Positions 4,165 through 37,899 are shown, counted from the stretch's first letter. The stretch: DNA of 64,000 nt from Iphione sp. A-MEVVRFRX5 (GCA_976226885.1 OZ320316.1:89404001-89468000); one strand, 5' to 3'. Numbers and translations: made by a program. The notes: generated by a model from the sequence alone, not told the origin.

Positions 4165-6549
4165 GTGATCAAAAACTCTAACGGATATGCCAAATTCACC
4201 GATCGCTGCTGCAAAATGGACACAGAAGCAGACAAGGTTCACTGTATAACTGACTACCCAAACGTATGGCTGCACCTTCTCGAACGCCTGATGGCCTGCG
4301 TAAGCCTGGTGGTTGTACTCTTTGGCCCTCTGGCTAGTCCAAAATTTTTCTCTGGGGCTGGGCTGGAGGTGGTACGTTATGTGGTCAAACTGAAGGAACC
4401 ATTATATAAGACAATGTGTTTAGTGCCACCAGATAAAGGCTCTGAGTTGGGTATTACGTATGAACATGTGATAGACTTACAAAATGAAAAAGGTTTCAAT
4501 TATTGCAAGAGCATGGCCAGGAAGATGCCTTGCAACAAAGTCATACCGATTAAGATATCTGAGTATCAAATATATGTCAGCTATGAAAAGCTACTACCAG
4601 AGAATAGTGTGCCTGTAGGTTTCTGGGCGTGTCTAATCCGCGCCATATTTATGTGCAAGATGCAAAGTGTTGACGCCTTTCAGGATTGTTGTGATGCTAA
4701 TTTGTGTGGTTGTTTCAAAGAGTCCAAACCGATGCCGTGGATATCAATATGCCGTGTGTTCGGAAGAATCCTAATGGTATTGTTTTTACCTTTTCCTTTT
4801 TATATTCGCCTAATCATGTACTTCATGTTTGAAGAGCCTGAGGTGTTGGCAAGGCAGCAGGCGGCAGCCAATACGGGTCTCCCAATATGCTTTGAGTATC
4901 GCCTCCTCCAGTACCTGACCCCAACACATCCACTCTTCATTGCAGCTTACTGTATATACTACACCGCTGGCTTCACACTGGCCTACTTCAGCACAACTGA
5001 GGGTAAGAGCAGATTTCAACAGGTTATCATAGACTCATTCCGCGATCTCAACGACCTCTCCTGGCTGAAAGCAATAGGGATGATTGTAAAGAATTTCCTT
5101 TGGCCCTTCAAGAAGCTTGGTATATTTGGTTTGATTTTCGGAGTCCTCTACTGGCCTTTGGTGATGCCAATATCGTTGCTTGCTGCGACTTTCAACTGTT
5201 TACCACTGGTATTTCTAACGTACCGCATGCTATTCCACGCCCTCCGCATTTCGACACGCGAAAAGGTGGCTCTAGAGCAGGTGCTTCCGGGTCAACTGCA
5301 AGATGATGCGACCGGCATTCAAATGTTTGAGACTGATAACCTGTTGACTTTTGTCAGTTCCCCTGGGAAGTTATCTAGTGCTACAAAGTACCTGAAGCGG
5401 TGTGAAGTGTGCAAAACTGTGTGTGATTTGATACTTGCAGTCATAAGCATACTAACTTTCTATGCCATAATGTTGATGGTGACTGAATGCGCCAGCTGCG
5501 TGCTACACATCTGTGTTTTCACCATGATGGGTATAATTGTTAATGCTGGTAAAGTTTTGAAATATGGTGCCCTTATCTTCATGGTTATCCTGTACAGTTA
5601 TGACTGCTATAATAACGTGTACCTCCAGTACCTAAAGCTGAACAAGGCCCTGTTTTCAGAGATTAAAAGCAGGATTAAGGACATAAGCGAGGTTACAATG
5701 TTACCATCGTACCTACAGGAGAACCGCGGCTTCAAATCACAAGAAAACAGTGATCAAGCGGACCATGAAAGTGCTGACGATTTATCCGAGGATAAAGAAA
5801 AACACTGGGTTATAAACGATCTCATTTTGTTTATCGATAACAACGATGTTCCCAGAATTCCGAAGAGACTTTTTGAACAGGTTTGTGATATCGAAGTTCC
5901 CGGTAGCCCAGGGCCCGTCTATAGAAGCCTTATAATGGCCACGGGCAAATTTCTGTTAATCATATTGTTTCTTATATTTGTTTTCATAGTCGTTTTATCA
6001 TTTGGTGATGTTTACAAAATCTCATCTACAAATCAGATGCTTGCAACAATGGCAGGTGGCTTCATGCCTTTCATATTCAGCAACCTGTTGAAGCCTGCCC
6101 AGCCGGCCATTGAGCTGGGGTCCGTTAGCTTTAAGAGTAAGCTAGAGGAAATAGTCATTAATTTTTGGCAGATGTGGCCGATGAGTGAGTTCACGTTCGA
6201 AATAGGGGAGGAGCCTGAGGAACTGGATGAAGAGGGTAGCGGTGACGACCGCAGTCAGAAGAGCAAGGATGCCAAGTCTGACAAAAAAGCAGGAAATGGT
6301 CTGACGAAGAAAATGAGCATGGCTGAAATTCTGGAAAAAGCGGATACCACATGTACCGAAGAAATTATGACTAGGCTCCTAGAAAGTAAGACCTACCGTC
6401 AGGCCAATGGCCAATACATTGATATCATAATGAAAGTAGATGGCGATACGCATTGGTCTGATGACTGCAGCAAGGGAAGTGGTAGAAATAGCCTCGATAA
6501 ACAGGGTTATGAGACAATGGAATTAATCCACACCAACTTCATTGTATAA
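4165..6549 (+). CDS. Exon 2 of the uncharacterised multi-pass membrane protein (794 codons, about 9-11 hydrophobic segments, acidic/charged C-terminal tail)
   Basis: Acceptor tctctttttcag|GTG at 4164/4165. The junction reads ...AVVCHQ|VIKNSNGYAKFTDRCC. Long uninterrupted ORF with hydrophobic stretches such as FLLIILFLIFVFIVVLSFG and LILAVISILTFYAIMLMV. AATAAA follows the stop at about 6550. Confidence 0.88.
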   Translation: MIKNSNGYAKFTDRCCKMDTEADKVHCITDYPNVWLHLLERLMACVSLVVVLFGPLASPKFFSGAGLEVVRYVVKLKEPLYKTMCLVPPDKGSELGITYEHVIDLQNEKGFNYCKSMARKMPCNKVIPIKISEYQIYVSYEKLLPENSVPVGFWACLIRAIFMCKMQSVDAFQDCCDANLCGCFKESKPMPWISICRVFGRILMVLFLPFPFYIRLIMYFMFEEPEVLARQQAAANTGLPICFEYRLLQYLTPTHPLFIAAYCIYYTAGFTLAYFSTTEGKSRFQQVIIDSFRDLNDLSWLKAIGMIVKNFLWPFKKLGIFGLIFGVLYWPLVMPISLLAATFNCLPLVFLTYRMLFHALRISTREKVALEQVLPGQLQDDATGIQMFETDNLLTFVSSPGKLSSATKYLKRCEVCKTVCDLILAVISILTFYAIMLMVTECASCVLHICVFTMMGIIVNAGKVLKYGALIFMVILYSYDCYNNVYLQYLKLNKALFSEIKSRIKDISEVTMLPSYLQENRGFKSQENSDQADHESADDLSEDKEKHWVINDLILFIDNNDVPRIPKRLFEQVCDIEVPGSPGPVYRSLIMATGKFLLIILFLIFVFIVVLSFGDVYKISSTNQMLATMAGGFMPFIFSNLLKPAQPAIELGSVSFKSKLEEIVINFWQMWPMSEFTFEIGEEPEELDEEGSGDDRSQKSKDAKSDKKAGNGLTKKMSMAEILEKADTTCTEEIMTRLLESKTYRQANGQYIDIIMKVDGDTHWSDDCSKGSGRNSLDKQGYETMELIHTNFIV

Positions 6550-26953: not shown

Positions 26954-29050
26954 ATGTTGCATGCCAGGCTAAGGTGGGCAAGATGGGGCGAGAAGCCTTC
27001 ATCGTATTTTTGTAGAATGGAAAAAGTTCAAGCAATGTCTAGAACATGTCCCTGTCTCCAAAAACGTCTCGGATGTATTTCGCTCATAAATGTTGGAACG
27101 AAGATATTTTCTATTATTTGGTATCTCAAATCAAAAAATATTTTCGAGTTATTTTAGCCATCGACTTTCAAAAGGCATTCGACTCAGTTAATTGGCACTT
27201 TTTACTATTTACCTTACATAAATTCGACTTCTCTATTTCTCCGCGTTAGGTAAATTACTGTATATACTAATTCCACAGCCTGTATTCCCAAAAATGGCTA
27301 CCGTACACTTGTAAATATTTCAATGTTACTAATTGAGTATGTCACTGATGCCCCTTATCGCCATTATTATATGTTAGGGCTACTGAAATACTCAGCTGTT
27401 GGATAAGGGTTTATGCAACTATGAAAGGTATTAATGTGCTTGACAAGACATTCAAGCTATCATAATATGGTGCTGACTTAACTCTTTTCGCTGCTGATTC
27501 AACCGACTTCCAAGCATATTTCAACCTGCCTTACTTAGTTTAGTAAAATATCTGGGGTTAGACCAATTCCCTCTAAATTCAATGGCCTCTTTTGGGGTAA
27601 TTTTGACAACAATAACTGTCCTACTGAGTTCAATTGATAAACCAGCATTAATGTCTTATGTATCTAATATGACGCAACATTACAAAGCAATAATTATGAG
27701 CTCAATGTACAACCAAGTTTGGACAAATATAAGATTGTATATGTGAAATGGAGCAGGCGTAGCCTCTCCGTTAAAGACAAAGTGGTTGTCCTGAATACAA
27801 TGGTGGCCCCAATTATGCTCTGTGTTTGTAATAATACTTCCATAAATATTTCACGAATTTGACAAGCTCATTGGAACATTTCTGGGGCCAGGACGTCCTG
27901 CACTCTCTTGAACTATGAGGACTGAAACTGGTTTCACTGCTACATCGATATCATTGTATTAAAACTACATGCATTAGCTAACGACAAGGATATTTATTAG
28001 CTTCCATTAGCACAGGTTGCACTTTATATACCACTGATATTCAAGCAAAATGTAAATCACAATTAACCTGGCCTCGTGCCCCATACTATGATAATATGTG
28101 TGATATCTGGAATACATATTATGTACATCCCCCCTCCAAACTTCAAACTGTATGTTCAGATCCCTTATGGAAAAATGATTATATCCATGCACCTTATCTA
28201 GATGTACTAGAGTCTACCTGGAAACCACGGGGCATATTTTATGTTGGCCAAGTTGTGGACAACAGAGGTATGGAAAGCTTCAGCTTTTGAAAAACTACAT
28301 GGTTTTGATTTTGACAAATGTTTTACAACCTTGGTACTCTAATACTTATGACTTGGCAGAGTTACCCTTAAATTACGATCACATTGTGATGGAAGGCCTG
28401 GATGATGTAATTGATATTGATATAACTACATGTTCAGCCAATACAATATGTTAGAGTATCCTCAACAGCGCTCCAACTTTTAAATACAAATGAATCTTCC
28501 AAATTTCATTGATGATATTGTAGGCAGAGGGCGAAATTGCAGAGGAGAGTGTAGCCGAGGGAGGAGGATACGTGCAATACTGCAGAGGGCAGGGTTAGAT
28601 AGTGGAGGGCCAGTCATTTCCTATTTAAGTGCACCTGTTTTATGATTTTGTGTCAGTTGTGTTCGAGCCATTTAGCAATATACAACCTCTTCCCAGATAC
28701 ATGTCATCTTTATCATGGTGGAAGCCAACAATATCTTTACGTGGCAATTTATATATATTATGGCCTTTCAATGTACACCCTGTACAAAATTACAAAGCTT
28801 CCAAATCATCAATCGTGTTATATCCTGCAACAAGCACTTGGCACCCTGCCATATATTAAGTCAGGATACATGTTCTTGGTGTTCACAAGAGGACAGTCTA
28901 CCCCACTACTTTTTCACGTGTAATATCACTGTACGCCCATTCTCAGTTAAGTGTGGCAAATGGTGTCTTCACGATTCAAATGATAGTGACTTTATGTGTG
29001 GTAGCTGAATACATGAAATAAAGCCTCTGGTGGATTGTGGAGATGTTTTG
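26954..29050 (+). pseudogene. Heavily decayed, 5'-truncated L1/Tx1-type ORF2
   Basis: Fragments RWARWGEKPSSYFCRMEK, AIDFQKAFDSVNWHFLL, DPLWKND and KLQSFQ...CSWCSQEDSLPHYFFTC appear in the same order as in the intact copy at 21990-25772, with many stops and frameshifts. Confidence 0.8.
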
Positions 29051-29755
29051 CATTATTTTGGTATATAATTTTATATGTCGGAAATCTACTTGCATACTCC
29101 AAATTGAGCATCAAATATGTGATATACCCATAAGTACCCCTGTCCACAGTTGATCTATTAAATGTAATAATGGCTGCTTAACCCTTTAATTTTTCGTTTT
29201 GGTATTTGTTTTGATGCTGTGGTAATCATTGCAACTTGCAATTTGTGTAGCAAGACTGAACTGATCTGAAGATAGAGGGGTTTTGGCAATATAAGCAAAA
29301 TTCAAAGTTCCACAGATTTTGTGTCATTTACGTCATTTGCACCATTTTGTCAGAAAGAAGATTATATTATACATGTGAGTGATGGAAAAAATACAGCATG
29401 AAGCAGTTAACTATGAAATATGTACATGGCAATGTTTATCTGGTCTGTATAGAATGTGGATGAAGGAATTTATTTGATGAGAATGAACCTTTTTTTTGCG
29501 ATTTTTTAAGGGTGTCATTTACGTCATGTGCTTTACATAGAGATATATAGAGATATTTGTATGGAGGTACGATCACTGGTTTATGGCTTATGTACACATA
29601 AGAAAATGTCATATATCTGTCTCTGTGTGTATTTCTGATTGGAAATAAAGAATAATTTGGCCTATGGCGTCATTTACGTCATGTGTCATTTACGTCATGT
29701 GATACCTATGTTTGTACATAAATACATGAATTTCGAGTGGGAATGGTTCAGTTGA

Positions 29756-29880
29756 TATATAAAACACTAGATGGCGCTAGTACTGTACCCCAGCGGTAGA
29801 AATCAGTACTAAAGCGTCTCCAACGCTCCAAGTGGATGCTGGCGACCTCAAATTATCCCGCTCTGAGAGATATTGTAAGT
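29756..29880 (+). promoter_or_regulatory. Putative transposase promoter and non-coding first exon (TATA box, CTCF-like motif, donor GTAAGT)
   Basis: TATATAAAA 29756-29764, CACTAGATGGCGCT 29765-29778 and donor GTAAGT 29875-29880, which can pair with acceptor ttgtttgtttag|G at 30082. Confidence 0.55.
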
Positions 29881-30086
29881 ATTACCATTTTTAATGGATG
29901 ATATTTTATAATATCCTGTAAAAAAGTAAATAAAGTAGTATGGATCTTTGTAGTATATATGTAAAATGAATTATATCACTATTTAAAAACTATGGGCATA
30001 CATTGTCATACGTGTCTTTAAAGGTCATATAGATGACGTAAATGACTAAGAAATGATGTAAATGACAGATTTGTTTGTTTAGGAGA

Positions 30087-30193
30087 ATGTCCAAAAAAAG
30101 TGGTGCTCAAGTTGCCCATGACTACCGGGAACGGAAGAAAAGCAGCGAAAATGGTACCTTGTGGAAGGAGGAGCAGTCTGCTCGAGTGATGAA
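30087..30193 (+). CDS. Predicted first coding exon of the transposase (MSKKSGAQVAHDYRERKKSSENGTLWKEEQSARVMK)
   Basis: ATG lies 4 nt after the acceptor at 30082. The peptide is basic, and the phase-2 donor AA|GTGTGT at 30194 matches the phase-2 acceptor at 33468, giving ...ARVMK-YYVPASK... Confidence 0.65.
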
Positions 30194-30674
30194 GTGTGTA
30201 TATTAAATTTATAGATTGTCTCCATCAAGTCGAAATTAATACCTCTTTTACTCTTGAAATCTGTAGTTCTAATTTAGAATTACATCCTAACAAATATCTA
30301 TGAAATTCCATCAATTCTCAATGCATGCAAATAACTGTATTTAAATTCTCGAACAAATCTCTAACAAACCAATTCTGTATGAAATGTTTATTATATTTAA
30401 GCTGAAATTGGTCTGAGACCTGTCTCTAACTAATTCTTGCATACCAGTAACCTATGTCTAACAGAATTTGCAAGGCAATTTTGTTAGAGATATAATGATA
30501 AGTGTATATCTCTAACGGAAAAAAATGGAGGTGTTCATCAGAATTGCACCTCTCCAAGAGGATGAACTGCAAAAAAATTAGTTCACTGTACACATGTTTG
30601 CAAAAACTAATAAAAACTGAAGTACAGTGAAATGCAAAATGAAATTATAAGAGATACACGTGAAGGAAGTTAAA

Positions 30675-31585
30675 CTAGTCCAAATTGAGTCCCTCACGTC
30701 CCTGAACACAGGCCACCCTGAGCAATCCCAACAGGTACTGCTCCTTAGACTTGACACCTGCCACTTTGGGGTATCTGTCCTGCAGTACCTGGATGTCTTC
30801 TGCACTTAGTGGGTGTCTTGCTGAGGGCTCTACAGGCTGGAAGACATAAGTAGTGGCTATCGCGGGGGCTGAGGCTGTATCTGGGTCTGATGCTGGTACA
30901 GTCTCACCCTGCACCTGTGCCTGTCCAAACTGTCTCTGTGGCGCGATTATCATTTGCTGCATCTGCAGTTCCAACTCTTGAACTTTTGCAGCTAACTCTG
31001 ACCGACTCAGTTCCTTTAAAGCACTGTACTGCTGCTCCCGTGCCTTCTGTTCCTGCATCACTGCATCTCGCCTGTCTTGTACTTCTTTAGTAACAGCAGT
31101 AGGCAAGGCTTGTAACTCGCCCACCCTGGAGTGCAATTTCCTGATCTCCCCCTGAAGGTCTTTAATTGCTGCCTCCTGTCTCTTTGCTTCTTCCGTGCGC
31201 ACACGCACCTCTGCCTTGAGCAGATCACGTACACCCTTCACATCGTCGAGGGTTGAGCGGATGCGCCTCATTTCATGCTGCATGTGGTACAGCGCCCGCT
31301 CCTTGTGATCGAGTGATTCCTGCTGTTCAGTGACTTGCCGCTCAAGCCGGTGAATTGTATCCTCTTTCTCGGTGACTTGGGGCTTTGCCTTTGAGGTGGA
31401 TGGCTTGGATGTATCTGCCGGTGTGGATGGTTTGGTTGCAGAACCTGGGTGTGAAGTGGACGGCTTGGTTGGCTTTGGGATTTTACTCCCCTTTCCCTTT
31501 CCCTTGCCTTTGCCTTTGCCTTTGCCTTTGCCTTTCCCTGAGGTGGAGGTGCTCTCTGTGGCATCAGTGTCAGATTTGTCAGAGT
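30675..31585 (-). CDS. Exon 3 of the nested antisense accessory gene (408 aa in total; join complement 32474..32279, 31886..31767, 31585..30675): (GK)n tract, Ser/Thr/Pro linker, long coiled coil
   Basis: Acceptor tttttttttcattctcag|AC (phase 1). The frame is open for 911 nt to the TAG and includes the ORF-track 30675..31283 protein. An alternative terminal splice to an acceptor near 30558 is possible. Confidence 0.8.
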
Positions 31586-31766
31586 CTGAGAATGAAAAAA
31601 AAACAGGTATCCAGTTAATTTAACATTATGAAAGTATTTTGTTGAAATATTCTTGAAATTACTCAAGTAGAATCTCTAACATCTCTATAAAGCATCCTTA
31701 ACATCTTTAACATCTCGAACATCTCTAATAATTCATATTGCATTGTACATTAATTTGTTGACCAAC

Positions 31767-31886
31767 CTGCATGCTCTAACATCTCAAATCTGGACAACTC
31801 ATCCCGATAGCGCTGCATCTTTGCTGCATACACCTCCTCTGTATCTCTCTCCAGACGGTAGGGGAGCTTGGGGCGTACACCTGCTT
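31767..31886 (-). CDS. Exon 2 of the accessory gene (120 nt, phase 1-1)
   Basis: Acceptor cattacag|AAGCAG and donor GCAG|GTTGGT. Reads (E)AGVRPKLPYRLERDTEEVYAAKMQRYRDELSRFEMLEHA without stops. Confidence 0.75.
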
Positions 31887-31922
31887 CTGTAATGTTTGAA
31901 GATGCACGATGCATTGCAAACG

Positions 31923-32235
31923 TTTCTCTAACAAAATAATTCGTCTGAGATACTAACAGAGTTCAAGCCGTCGCTAACATTTCTCTAACAAAATAATTTG
32001 TCTGAGATACATGGCACTAACAGAGTTCAAGCCGTCGCTAACATTTCTCTAACAAAATAATTCGTCTGAGATACTAACAGAGTTCAAGCCGTCGCTAACA
32101 TTTCTCTAACAAAATAATTCGTCTGAGTTACATGGCACTAACAGAGTTCAAGCCGTCGCTAACATTTCTCTAACAAAATAATTCGTCTGAGTTACATGGC
32201 ACTAACAGAGTTCAAGCCGTCGCTAACATTTCTCT
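31923..32235. repeat. Tandem array of five 57/64-bp units in accessory-gene intron 1
   Basis: tttctctaac recurs at 31923, 31980, 32044, 32101, 32165 and partially at 32229. Units differ by a 7-bp indel (catggca). Confidence 0.95.
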
Positions 32236-32278
32236 TACTGAAATATGTGTGCACATGTATGAAATAAATGGTACTAAC

Positions 32279-32474
32279 CCCTTTGTTTCCTCCTCCGGCT
32301 TTCTTGCATTTGCACTCTCGCTCTTTTTCTGTATGCCTCTTCATCCTCTTCTGTCTGTTTCTCACGCCACTTGCGGCATGATTCTCGGTGGGCTATCCTT
32401 TCTTCCTCTTCGTGCAAAGCCTGAGATAACTCTGAGTCGATGCTCATCGGACTTGCTTCTCTTCCTTCTGCCAT
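32279..32474 (-). CDS. Exon 1 of the accessory gene (basic, bZIP-basic-region-like N-terminus)
   Basis: ATG at 32474. Reads MAEGREASPMSIDSELSQALHEEEERIAHRESCRKWREKQTEEDEEAYRKRARVQMQESRRRKQR, then a phase-1 donor G|GTTAGT at 32278. Confidence 0.78.
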
Positions 32475-32581
32475 ACTGAGTCGGTCTGTTCACCTTGATG
32501 TCTGAACGCAGAGTGTGTGATGCCTAGGGGATGCACCATGGGCCCCTCTGGAAGCGCGACAACCTGCGCGTCGGTTAAGGG

Positions 32582-32614
32582 CCAATCAAGCGTTGCTATG
32601 CAACGCTTGATTGG
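32582..32614. promoter_or_regulatory. Perfect 15-bp-arm inverted repeat carrying two CCAAT boxes, upstream of the accessory gene
   Basis: CCAATCAAGCGTTGC-TAT-GCAACGCTTGATTGG, about 110-140 bp upstream of the minus-strand ATG. Confidence 0.6.
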
Positions 32615-32720
32615 GTGCGCGCCCGTGGTTTTGACTAATACCACATCAGACGGGTAATTCCCCGCTGTCTGGCAGTGCCCCTCTCCCACATTCCTCGCAT
32701 ATTTCATCAGCACTTGATAT

Positions 32721-33137
32721 ATCTAAAGGTTTGATCATCGCTAACATTTCTCTAACGGAAAATTCTGTTAGAGAACCGTTAGCGATGATCAAACCTTTAG
32801 ATCGCTAACATTTCTCTAACAGAATTTTCTGTTAGAGAACCGTTAGCGATGATTGAAACTTTACATCGCTAACAATTCTCTAACAGAATTTTCCGTTAGA
32901 GTAATGTTAGTGATGATCAAACCTTTAGATCGCTAACATTTCTCTAACAGAATTTTCTGTTAGAGAACCGTTAGCGATGATTGAAACTTTAGATCGCTAA
33001 CATCTCTCTAACAGAATAATTCTGTTAGAGAGATGTTAGCGATCTAAAGGTTTGATCTGTAACAGAATAATTCTGTTAGAGAAATGTTAGCGATCTAAAG
33101 TTTCAATCATCGCTAACGGTTCTCTAACAGAAAATTC
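32721..33137. repeat. Array of palindromic 64-bp units (hairpin/cruciform array) that inverts polarity at its right end
   Basis: ATCGCTAAC unit starts at 32737, 32801, 32865, 32929 and 32993. Each unit is an imperfect palindrome. The first has perfect 25-bp arms (32721-32745 and 32778-32802). Confidence 0.95.
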
Positions 33138-33468
33138 ACAGTGCTAGTGGGGGAATCACCATGGCCCCCCAAGTATCCCACATCAGCCGTGCGTCAGTGA
33201 AGGGCCAATTTTAAGTGTTGCTACGCGACGCTTGTCTGTTGTGCGCTTTTATGTGGTGTGATCATGACTACACTGTTCTTCAGGCCTACTGGGCGGTCTC
33301 CAATGCAATGTTTATTAATTTTAACAATCTTTAATAGAATTCTCATCATCTCGCACCGACTATACAGATTTTTTCCATATCATTTACAGTCTCAAAACCA
33401 CACTTGTGAGAGATTTGTTAGAGATGCCATCTATGCTACCATATCAATTCATTGCATTTTCCTACCAG

Positions 33469-35890
33469 GTACTATGTTCCTGCATCAAAGGTGACAAGCA
33501 ACCGGGAACTCTTCTTCCGACGGGAGCGAAATAGACAAGCACAGGAAAGGAGGCGTGCCAAACTGAGGGCCGAGAAGATGGCTCGTGAAGCTGAGCTTGA
33601 AGCAGCAGCCCCGTCCATCTCCACACCTGAAAGGAGGTCTGAATCTTCAAGTCAACCGACGCCTGGCCCTTCAAGTGCAACTCCTGGCCCTTCAAGTGCA
33701 ACTCCTGGCCCTTCAAGTGCAACTCCTGGCCCTTCAAGTGCTTCAACACCTAGCAATTCCAGTCAAGAAACTTCCAGCCAGTCATCAACAACTCTGCCAG
33801 GCCTCACAGTGCGGTTCCCATTCCAAGCGAGTGGACGTCAGAAGAGCAGGAGAAGGATTAGCAGAGCTGTATCAAAAGCCAATCGAAAGATAGCCAAGCT
33901 GGAGACTGAGAAGACCAAAGAGAAAAGAAAGGTCTGGAGACTCCAGAAACAAATGCAGCGAATGAAGGCAAAGATGAAGAAAATACAGGCTGAGCAGAGA
34001 AAGAAAAGAGCCAAGACCCCAAGAGAACTGGCCATGCATGATTTGCTTAATGTGGGGCTCGATCCAATCACGCATCGTAGGCTCCTAAGCAAACTGACTG
34101 CACATCATGCATTGATGTCACAGATAAAGCAGGGAGCGGAGAAGAGGAAAACAAAGCAGAAGAGATCCATCGAGAGGGTGATCTCAGGGCACATCACACG
34201 CAAATACCGTGTCCTTCGATATGTTGGTCTACACACCGGTCTCAACAGGAACCATCTGGCTCGGAAGCACTCAAGGCCCAAGAGAAGGTTGCCTGCCCTG
34301 AAGAAGGACCTTCGGAAGGCGGTCATAACATTTCTCGAGAGAGATGATGTTTCCAGGGTGCTGCCAGGCAAAAAGGACTGTACAATCGATGGATCTCAGA
34401 AGATTCAGACACGGGTACTTTGTGACTACCTGCATAACCTCTGGCTGAAGTTCAAGAGCGAGTCTCCAGAGCAGCCAGTGTCCCTGTCTGTATTCTGTCG
34501 GATGCGCCCCAAATACATCAAACTGTCACACTTTTCAAGCCGAGTGAGCTGTCTGTGCATTTATCACCAGAATGTGGTGTTGAAATTAAAGGCTATGGGG
34601 GTCACTGCCTCACCAGATATCCTCATCAAAGAGAAGAGTGATGCCAAGATAACTGCTGCATGCTCCTTCAGGGAAAAGGTGGCCTACTATACTTGGGAAA
34701 AATCAGGTGAAGACAAGAGCCATGTGAAGTGTGTTCAGAAGGAGGTCCCAAGGCAACAATTTGAAGAGCAGCTCATGACAAACCTGAAGCATTTCCGAGG
34801 GCATGTAGAGAGGATCAATGCTCAGTATCAAGCATTGAGGGCACTGAAGTCTACCCTTCAACCAGAGGAAGTGATGGTGTTAATGGACTTCGCCGAGAAC
34901 TACACGTGTAAGCAGGTTGAAGAGGTGCAGTCCGCCTATTGGTGTCAGGTACAGGTCACCCTTCATCCAGTAATTGTGTACTTCAGGGAAGGTGACGAGG
35001 TGAAACATCAGAGCTACGTGTACATCAGTGATGTATCATCCCATGGTCCTCCAACAGTGACAGCCATCATCACTGCTATCAACGAAGAGTTGGACGCAAT
35101 GCCCACCCCAGTGTCAACAGTGCACTATGTTACAGACGGACCAAGTTCCCAGTACAGGAATAAGGTGGCCTTGTACCTGGTAGCCAACCACAGGCTCTTG
35201 TTTCTTAGGTCTGCCTCATGGTCATACCATGAGGTGGGCCATGGGAAAGGTGCCTGTGATGGAGTGGGAGGCACAATCAAGCGGCTGGCAGACGAAGCTG
35301 TTCGGCAAGGCAAGACAGTGATCACTGGTGCTTCCCAGTTCTACGACTGGTTATTGTCTTCATCTCTCAAGATCAGAGGCAAGTTTATCACACAGGATCA
35401 AGTGAACCGAGCTTCAGACTTCCTTGAGAAAGCAGAACTCAAGCAAGTGAAAGGGACTATGTCCATCCATGCAGTGAAAGGTTTGCAGTCTGGCAACATT
35501 GCAATCAGAGCAACAAGCTGCTTCTGTGCAAGGTGCAAGACAGTCAATGATGTCTGTGACGGATGGCAGGTAGTACGCCTCAACAAATTCAAGGAGGAGG
35601 TGTGTTTCGATACACACACCTACGTGGCAGCATCAGTGGATGGTAATGCTTACTTTGGACGCATCGAAGCACAGAGAAATTCTGAGGTCAAGGTTAGCTT
35701 CCTTCTGACAGCAGAGGGTGTCGATGACGTCCTCAGATGGCCGAAGCCAAAAGATCAGCTGTGGCTGACTCATGATGACATCCTCTGCAACGTGCCAGCT
35801 CCTATCCCGACTGGGAACAGAGGATACACCTTCCCACAGAAGGTTTTCAAGAAAGTCGCTGTACTGATGGCAGACTCTGTTAATGAGTAA
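33469..35890 (+). CDS. Main exon of the Sola2-like DDD transposase (842 aa including the predicted first exon), uninterrupted
   Basis: Acceptor ttttcctaccag|G. Motifs DFAENY (D at 34886), VQSAYW..QVTLHP, TDGPSSQYRN (D at 35135), HGKGACDGVGGTIKR (D at 35258) and CFCARC. The Sola2 label is from my recollection of these motifs. Confidence 0.88.
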
Positions 35891-37899
35891 TTTCAGTTCT
35901 TTATATTTCAAACAGATCGGTTCTAGTTGACTCTGTTAGAGATTTGTTGGTGATTTGTAGAAAATGATATCTAGAGATCAACATCATTCAATACTTTCTT
36001 TCAGTCTCAAGTCTCTAACAAGTCTCTAACAGAGTGAACTCTGTTAGAGATCTGTTTTCTACTGAATATAAAGAATTATATTTTTGTTATTTGATCAAAT
36101 TACCTGTGACGAATATGCATCTTCATTAAATAAATGGCTAAATTTCTTGGAATGTACTCCTAGTCATGCGTTAATCTTTCACTTCTCTAACAAACCATAG
36201 CTGATTGAGGTGCTAATGTAGCTTTTGTATCTCAAACAAATCACTAACATTTAAGAAACAGAAAATGATAGAGATTCTAGATTAGGTCATTTACGTCATG
36301 TATTGTGATGTACATCAACTAGAGATATGAGAGATACTCATCCAATATGTACAGGAAGATATTACATACTGAAAGAAAATGTATCTTTATTACTGGCAAT
36401 TTTTTATTTGAGAAAAAATTAACAAAATACATATGTCATTTACGTCATCTGACATATGTCATTTACGTCATGTGAGAGAAAATTGCAAATATTGCACAGA
36501 ATGATGACTTATTTTGTAAGAAAGCACAAAACATATGATTAGTTTGATTAATTCCATACAAGCTGCATGCTTCAACATTTTTCTCCAAAGCTTGCTTGAC
36601 AGTGGAAGTGTGTCATTTACGTCATTTCAGCCATATTCTGTACAATGACTCAGGGCAGTTCTTACACTTCTGTCCTTCATTAAACAACTTTGATATCTTG
36701 AATACATACCATTTCTGCTTCTTGGCTTCATTCTTATTGAAGCTCTAGTCCTAGCTTCACAGTTTTTATAATTAATGGCATGATGTATAACATTTAAAAT
36801 GTCCACATTTTGGCTTGGTTGAAAAAACATGTAAGACAAGAATGCCTGTGGGACATTTCAGAGAAGCATATAAAAACTAAATTATACATACTTTACAATG
36901 TAGAATAAATACTGTTCCAGGCTGTTCTTTCAAAATAACATATCCTATCTTATGTTAAAGGAAACTTACACCTTACTGTGCTATTATAGCAGATGACGTA
37001 AATGACACTAGTGCTTTTTAGTGTTTTTTTCCTTAAATACACATTTAGATATTTTTTCAACCATTATATCCTGGATCCTAATTTTTGAAAATTTTAATAG
37101 GACAAATCGTAGACTTCTGAGAAATAATACTGATTTTAATTTAGACACTAATTTATTTTTTGCTAAAACCAATTTGGAATTGCCACACTTAACTGAGAAT
37201 GGGCCTGTAATCTTTTGGAAAGCTTTTTTACTTGGTGGTTTAGTTGTTTCCAAGTAGATATTTAGAGTCCATCTGTATAATGTTATAATGTTTTAATATT
37301 GTTAATATACCATATAGGACAGTTCTTAATCACCTTCTTATCCACAACAAATATTAACGTAAACCATTTCATGACAGGGACATAAATTGGTATCTATGGT
37401 TACCAGAGACAACTATCATACACTATCAAATTGTATTATACTGTCAATCTTCATGAAAAGACGATGGCTCGTGTATGGAATCTAATATATAACATATCTA
37501 TGTTGCTGTCATTCCCCCCCACTCCTTGTATATACCATGCCCTCTCATCGATATTCCTAACATATATAATTTTACTCTAAACCTATTACATATACCATAT
37601 TATCTTTGCATTGCTCAGCTATTCCTTTCTATTCTATTCTTTCTATTTTTCTTGTTATATATTTATCTTTCATGCCATTGTTAAAACACCAAAAAGCATA
37701 TATTTGCCACAAAACTGTATGTTACCTCAGAAATAAAATTGGCAGATGCCTTTTTAAAATCACAACAGAGCTATATTTGTGAGAACCTTAAAATGGTACC
37801 CACACCTTTACTTCATAGACCTTGAACGACCTTGAAGATAGGGAACTAGTCTAGAAGTTTATCCTTCCTCTTTGCATCGTGATGATACTTTGCTCAAAA

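Follow-up and report, generated by a model that had tools for sequence, protein, structure and literature searches.

The Sola superfamily, reportedly established by Bao, Jurka, Kapitonov and Jurka in 2009, is to our knowledge among the least studied of the cut-and-paste superfamilies, and we know of no activity assay, structure or cofactor for it. Sola2 elements have short terminal inverted repeats and a transposase of ~800-900 amino acids (aa), whose RNase H-like core contains an acidic triad. PIF/Harbinger and MuDR encode a transposase and a co-evolving second protein in genes that lie side by side, in an orientation that varies by family, and the Harbinger partner has a Myb/SANT DNA-binding domain. 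In En/Spm, a CACTA element of maize, the coding sequence of the second protein lies in the long first intron of the other gene, and both products arise by alternative splicing of one sense-strand precursor. Here we analyse a 64,000-nucleotide (nt) stretch of DNA from Iphione sp. A-MEVVRFRX5 (GCA_976226885.1 OZ320316.1:89404001-89468000), referred to below as the window and numbered from its first letter, which probably carries an autonomous, recently active two-gene DNA transposon of the Sola2 group. Its full-length transposase quite likely requires the removal of an intron that contains a partner gene, termed ORF2 (open reading frame 2), on the opposite strand.

Compared with En/Spm, the inner gene of this element lies on the opposite strand and has a predicted promoter and polyadenylation (polyA) signal of its own. 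Compared with PIF/Harbinger and MuDR, it is nested and not placed side by side with the transposase gene, and its product, unlike the Myb/SANT protein of Harbinger, has no recognisable domain. A literature search returned no paper on an antisense gene nested in a transposase intron, nor on a coiled-coil partner in Sola2. Published Sola2 elements include those of bivalves (PMC10294476) and the Sola2-Fanzor1 chimeric elements of Dictyostelium fasciculatum and Polysphondylium pallidum (Bao and Jurka 2013, PMC3627910), the latter contradicting, as a general statement, a preliminary description of this DNA that knew of no accessory gene in Sola2. The chimeric elements likewise combine a Sola2 transposase and a second gene in one element with 4-bp duplications. 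However, their second gene encodes a TnpB-like nuclease and lies in the 3' part, beside the transposase gene, whereas the one described here would encode a coiled-coil protein without a nuclease domain and lies antisense within the transposase intron.

The element and its split transposase gene

Flank comparison placed the ends of the transposon at 28934 and 37205 (8,272 bp). The nested two-gene layout of the preliminary description stands, but the actual unit is larger than the extent given there and encloses it (29756-35890). The features of the element and of its two genes are as follows.

28930-28933 (left) and 37206-37209 (right), unstranded: target site duplication TGTA
28934-28959, plus strand: 5' terminal inverted repeat, 26 bp, GGCCCATTCTCAGTTAAGTGTGGCAA
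29757-29874, plus strand: TATA box (29757) and predicted non-coding exon 1, donor ATT/GTAAGT
29875-30082, plus strand: predicted 5' intron, 208 bp, with a GTAAGT donor and the acceptor TTTGTTTAG (TTTAG), kept also at 7-12% divergence
30083-30193, plus strand: transposase coding exon 1, ATG at 30087, 35 codons and 2 nt, encoding the conserved basic N-terminus
30194-33468, plus strand: transposase intron, 3,275 bp, phase 2, AA/GTGTGT ... TTTTCCTACCAG/G, holding the whole second gene
32474-32279, minus strand: coding part of ORF2 exon 1, ATG at 32474, encoding an acidic and then basic N-terminus
31886-31767, minus strand: ORF2 exon 2, 120 nt, flanked by phase-1 introns
31585-30678, minus strand: ORF2 exon 3, 302 codons, stop at 30677-30675
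30392-30387, minus strand: putative AATAAA of ORF2, ~285 nt past the stop, read from the sequence
33469-35890, plus strand: transposase main exon, 806 codons and stop, in a frame open from 33452
34886-34888, 35135-35137 and 35258-35260, plus strand: candidate catalytic D codons
37180-37205, minus strand: 3' terminal inverted repeat, 26 bp

When positions 29400-36600 were used to query the genome from which the window comes (1.18 Gb, 89 contigs), at least 18 full repeat-to-repeat copies were recovered on ten contigs, with perfect 4-bp duplications in 18 of 18, each of a different sequence. Divergence from the window copy is 0-0.2% for about ten of them, 1-2% for a second group, 2.5% for one and 6-12% for the older ones. 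The near-identical copies and perfect duplications indicate very recent activity of a cut-and-paste transposon. The family looks currently active, given its ten or so near-identical, intact copies, and is a natural start for a first Sola2 transposition assay. Window position 28934 is C in this copy and G in the other copies with intact ends, and this copy may be the poorer excision substrate.

Searches and fold predictions were run exon by exon, and the joined frames were checked by script for stops and substitutions. Against Pfam, which holds no Sola model, the transposase main exon gave no match. A bZIP reading of the basic regions was rejected, since neither this exon nor ORF2 exon 1 matched a bZIP family of Pfam at E <= 1. 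The 36 transposase homologues found share 33-40% identity, are mostly 800-880 aa long and include named ones from Mytilus, Holothuria, Lytechinus and Mercenaria. An AlphaFold model built with 11 sequences (mean predicted local distance difference test score, pLDDT, 72.6) has a core with the order strand-strand-strand-helix-strand-helix-strand-helix. The top ~30 matches of this model in a Foldseek search of the PDB were retroviral integrases, the IstA transposase, RNase HI and PIWI, with weak scores that were nonetheless concordant (E about 1e-3 to 1e-2, probability up to 0.99). As modelled, the core has an RNase H-like (DDE/D) fold. Three aspartates are invariant among 11 homologues: D473, which follows strand 1, D556, which follows strand 4, and D597, on the next helix. 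In the model they occupy the positions of the catalytic triad of this fold and are candidate catalytic residues.

The element shares with Sola2 the 4-bp duplications, the terminal inverted repeats (26 bp here) and the transposase size. Compared by eye, LMDFAEN, ISDVSSH and GHGKGACDG resemble LMDFKEN, FSDxxxH and YHGKSDVD in the Sola2_DFa-2 transposase, the sequence of which is printed in supplement 3 of PMC3627910, and the same paper names 4-bp duplications as the Sola2 feature. The duplications and these local motifs make the assignment to Sola2 reasonable; together with the RNase H-like fold they agree with the Sola2-type transposon proposed in the preliminary description. A 21-bp repeat encoding PGPSSAT (33662-33741) varies in unit number among near-identical copies, with frames of 822 or 829 aa. 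Judging from the 6,473 first-look candidates of the transposase search, this genome harbours a very large and diverse set of Sola2-like elements.

The main exon by itself encodes an incomplete family member. Full-length homologues start with MxKSRAEIQxAYRxRxK...ERxRxK followed by YYVP, whereas in the window the long frame opens at precisely this YYVP and immediately follows an AG at 33467-33468; there is a stop a short distance upstream, and the exon lacks an ATG before its residue 37. The 36 missing N-terminal residues are encoded at 30087-30193 (MSKKSGAQVAHDYRERKK...SARVMK), and this peptide carries the family-invariant M1, A7, Y13, R14 and R16. When a profile of the homologue N-termini was run against the whole genome, it matched exon 1 at E = 4.8e-12, and the N-termini that exon 1 resembles are those of bivalve and echinoderm homologues. 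Just before the acceptor, tblastn gave no match to a relic of the first 36 codons. Because the AA at the end of the exon and the G after the acceptor form AAG (Lys), the junction VMK/YYVP neither loses nor gains a residue relative to the unsplit homologues, and the joined frame, ...SARVMK/YYVPASK, comprises 842 codons and is stop-free. The donor at 30193 and the acceptor at 33468 are unchanged in essentially all copies, including those diverged by 7-12%, and in all young copies exon 1 has an intact ATG, frame and donor. We infer that the full-length 842-aa transposase arises by splicing of 30193 to 33469. The two proposals of the preliminary description that bear on this point, a transposase ORF that lacks an upstream ATG and begins at a phase-2 acceptor (33468), and an upstream basic coding exon that ends in a phase-2 donor, were both borne out. 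An artefact of assembly or annotation, or an open frame arising by chance, has a virtually negligible probability as the source of the layout: no point in support of this was found, and against it stand 18 independent insertions on ten contigs, all with one layout and each with its own target duplication, as well as the whole-genome E value of exon 1.

Upstream of this exon, a 5' non-coding exon and the 208-bp intron are predicted, and the TATA box and GTAAGT donor are conserved in all copies that span this stretch. With the 5' intron removed, an ATG at 29836 opens a 26-codon frame across the junction (29836-30121), which overlaps the ATG at 30087 out of frame; such an upstream ORF could possibly damp translation of the transposase.

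The nested gene and its pairing with transposases

The spliced frame of ORF2 comprises 408 codons, both of its introns are in phase 1, and all four of its splice signals are conserved among copies, those with up to 12% divergence included. Exon 3 encodes a (GK)n tract, a Ser/Thr/Pro-rich stretch, a helix of ~150 residues and a short C-terminal helical part. The predicted fold of this part consists of disorder, then one helix of ~150 residues and then a short, low-confidence helical tail. The product would begin with a charged N-terminus, pass into a disordered linker and contain a single long coiled-coil helix. If the AATAAA at 30392-30387 is the polyA signal, the whole unit, from ~32500 to 30370, fits within the transposase intron (30194-33468). 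The preliminary description had placed in this intron a three-exon minus-strand gene, two repeat arrays and a duplicated promoter module; all are present, and the coordinates of the ORF2 coding exons have been corrected here. An exhaustive search with ORF2 gave three weak coiled-coil matches only, and a protein atlas gave unnamed clusters with low recognition only. Derivation of the ORF2 N-terminus from that of the transposase was considered and rejected (hhalign probability 0.4%). The hexamer repeat that encodes the GK tract (31490-31539) varies in unit number among near-identical copies, with frames of 310-318 aa.

ORF2 is stop-free in 15 of the 18 other copies (16 of 19 with the window copy), several of which have a few gapped codons. 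In copies with at least 10 substitutions, the ratio of nonsynonymous to synonymous substitution rates (dN/dS) is 0.33-0.62 for ORF2 and 0.18-0.34 for the transposase, values that are raised for both genes by decay after insertion. In the copy at C13:7.13 Mb, the ORF2 exons have diverged by 6-9%, compared with 10-14% for introns and flanks, the exons being roughly half as diverged as the introns. These values argue for purifying selection on both genes.

The same genome contains dozens of ORF2 paralogues, with identities of 49-56% in exon 3 and 43-48% in exon 1, most of them with open frames, as well as transposase paralogues of 45-61% identity. The two sets of coordinates match: at dozens of loci, ORF2 paralogues adjoin transposase paralogues of 45-53% identity. 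At loci listed by both searches an ORF2 paralogue always lies beside a transposase, the transposase search having scored 56 of 6,473 candidates, so that solitary ORF2 copies are possible. The layouts of the other families were read from coordinates and open-frame lengths and can be sorted into several types. A nested family at C1:69.77 Mb, with a transposase of 53% identity, has the following order.

C1:69766548-69766655, plus strand: N-terminal-like exon
C1:69766977-69767867, minus strand: ORF2 exon 3
C1:69768474-69768647, minus strand: ORF2 exon 1
C1:69769379 onward, plus strand: main ORF, a 784-aa open frame beginning YYVP

The locus at C1:107.17 Mb is nested as in the window, with an N-terminal exon on the plus strand, ORF2 on the minus strand and a main ORF on the plus strand. 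At C11:77.22 Mb (transposase identity 45%), by contrast, the N-terminal motif and the core lie in one 859-aa open frame that runs from 77219873 onward, and ORF2 lies upstream on the opposite strand (77217676-77219083), an arrangement that is head-to-head and not nested. Further head-to-head families were found at C17:7.41 Mb, C10:70.90 Mb, C22:2.45 Mb and C19:67.48 Mb, and many other families of the genome have unsplit transposase frames of 790-870 aa. In Mytilus and Holothuria the homologues are unsplit, single genes, and no ORF2 lies within 7 kb of them, whereas the gene described here is split after codon 36 and has a second gene in its intron. In a family at C26:44590172-44592920 (47% identity), the N-terminal exon lies ~0.2-0.5 kb from the main ORF, as judged from coordinates, and a short intron appears to occupy the equivalent place without a nested gene.

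The association of ORF2 paralogues with diverged transposases in several multi-copy families, a non-nested layout included, indicates long-term co-inheritance. On sequence grounds, ORF2 can be taken as a conserved, long-standing partner of this transposase clade and no random insertion, which is new here. Its conservation points to two-component systems, of the kind seen in Harbinger or MuDR, in some Sola2 lineages. The presence of the nested order in two families, set against the other layouts, implies that nesting is a derived layout found in at least two deeply diverged families, and the partner gene would either predate nesting or have moved between lineages. The element offers a clear case of intron gain inside a transposase gene, and the occurrence of nested, head-to-head and single-gene layouts in one genome provides a natural comparison of gene arrangement and transposon regulation. 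Transposon surveys based on ORFs would call this transposase N-terminally truncated and overlook the partner gene.

Several findings weigh against the two-gene reading. A decayed sister copy at C10:54.68 Mb matches the window element at 83-88% identity on both sides, as far as ~30399 and then from 33456 onward. Between these points it carries a 2.1-kb cassette in which ORF2 has only 32% identity and is riddled with stops.

C10:54678000-54687999, about 4204-6322 of that stretch: cassette of the sister copy

The cassette type itself has only a few relatives, and these are old. The pattern implies that the cassette and the remaining element do not have one simple shared history, and it looks like either cassette exchange or very uneven rates of change. 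The two break points correspond to the ORF2 polyA region and to ten bases before the transposase acceptor, and a more distant deletion derivative at C11:72.59 Mb has ~600 bp between the same points. Deletion derivatives without the cassette exist, as is expected for non-autonomous copies, and the cassette is therefore dispensable in cis. Further points on this side are that the dN/dS of ORF2 lies below 1 by a moderate margin only, that its protein has no Pfam domain, and that a word-indexed search gave no ORF2 relative outside this genome.

Some of these findings would also suit a different origin, in which the block 30400-33456 is an unrelated passenger, either a captured host gene or another insertion in a pre-existing intron, that does not serve the element. 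The gap in the family at C26:44.59 Mb is too short for ORF2, so an intron without the gene probably exists; the sister lineage has a very different cassette between the same break points, and the ORF2 protein lacks a known domain. Nevertheless, ORF2 is kept in 18 of 18 full copies, those diverged by 6-12% included, and stays stop-free in most of them under what appears to be purifying selection. Moreover, ORF2 paralogues (50-56% identity) accompany transposases of 45-53% identity in several families, one layout being non-nested. We regard a passenger origin as quite unlikely. The retention of the block in every full copy also answers a check suggested in the preliminary description, namely whether other copies lack it, and by this check the reading is not refuted.

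Repeats, control modules and proposed mechanism

The intron and the subterminal regions contain repeat clusters and two promoter-like modules, which are listed here with the transposase polyA signal.

29328-30061, unstranded: 5' subterminal TTACGTCAT cluster, five exact sites and one with one mismatch, overlapping the predicted transposase promoter and 5' intron
31919-32235, unstranded: tandem array of 64-bp units, each with TCTCTAACA, inside ORF2 intron 1; unit number varies among copies
32525-32625, unstranded: module 1, containing CCAAT, immediately before the ORF2 start
32721-33137, unstranded: array of 64-bp self-complementary units with paired TCTCTAACA / TGTTAGAGA, palindromic, between the genes
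33145-33255, unstranded: module 2, a direct repeat of module 1 (74% identity), beyond the palindromic array
35934-36192, unstranded: five TCTCTAACA sites past the transposase stop
36129-36134, plus strand: transposase AATAAA
36291-37001, unstranded: 3' subterminal TTACGTCAT cluster, five exact sites

Modules 1 and 2 are ~110 bp long and share one orientation, that of the minus-strand gene. Module 1 is likely to be the core promoter of ORF2, and module 2 looks like a second promoter copy for ORF2 and not like the transposase promoter. These modules bear on the possibility that the upstream exon is unused, so that transcription starts in the spacer, in the region of module 2, translation starts at the first Met of the main exon, and the match to exon 1 is a relic. 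Such a start would be in keeping with the promoter-like module that lies 215-325 bp before the acceptor and with the head-to-head families, in which the transposase promoter must sit in the spacer beside that of ORF2. However, module 2 is oriented as the minus-strand gene, and the resulting protein would be truncated by 72 residues, including a basic region conserved across phyla (R17 invariant). In addition, the ATG, frame and donor of the upstream exon are kept in all young copies, and an equivalent exon is found at the same place in the family of 53% identity; a relic would not last so long. An unused upstream exon is therefore very improbable.

The preferred reading, a transposase spliced across its partner gene, can be set out as a mechanism. 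Transposase transcription would start from a promoter inside the 5' subterminal repeat region. The short exon for the basic N-terminal 36 residues would be spliced over the 3,275-bp intron to the 806-codon catalytic exon, giving a product of 842 aa. The intron itself would form a complete opposite-strand unit, with a promoter module, three exons and a polyA signal, for a 408-aa product. This product would most likely serve transposition as an oligomerising cofactor or as a regulator. A gating of transposase output by antisense transcription and by splicing of the intron, a possibility raised in the preliminary description, is compatible with this anatomy, in which the two units would overlap fully over ~2.1 kb. 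A more far-reaching proposal is that this Sola2 clade depends on an undescribed coiled-coil partner and that, in the nested families, polymerase collision or double-stranded RNA from the 2.1-kb overlap couples and limits the expression of both genes, making the element a self-regulating switch; we consider this doubtful.

The TCTCTAACA motif occurs 24 times in the 64-kb window, compared with 0.67 expected, and all occurrences fall within 30358-36192. In copies diverged by ~8-9%, the cluster past the transposase stop retains 5/5 and 4/5 of its sites; the sites are mutated in the copy at C10:54.68 Mb, which is itself decayed overall. Exact TTACGTCAT sites number 10 in the window, all within the two subterminal regions of the element. 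Both repeats probably serve as binding sites for element proteins, and the ORF2 protein may possibly act through the TCTCTAACA repeats that flank both genes. The two 64-bp arrays shift by whole units (64, 128 or 249 bp) among copies that are 0-0.2% apart, and such changes among near-identical copies indicate that array turnover is much faster than point mutation.

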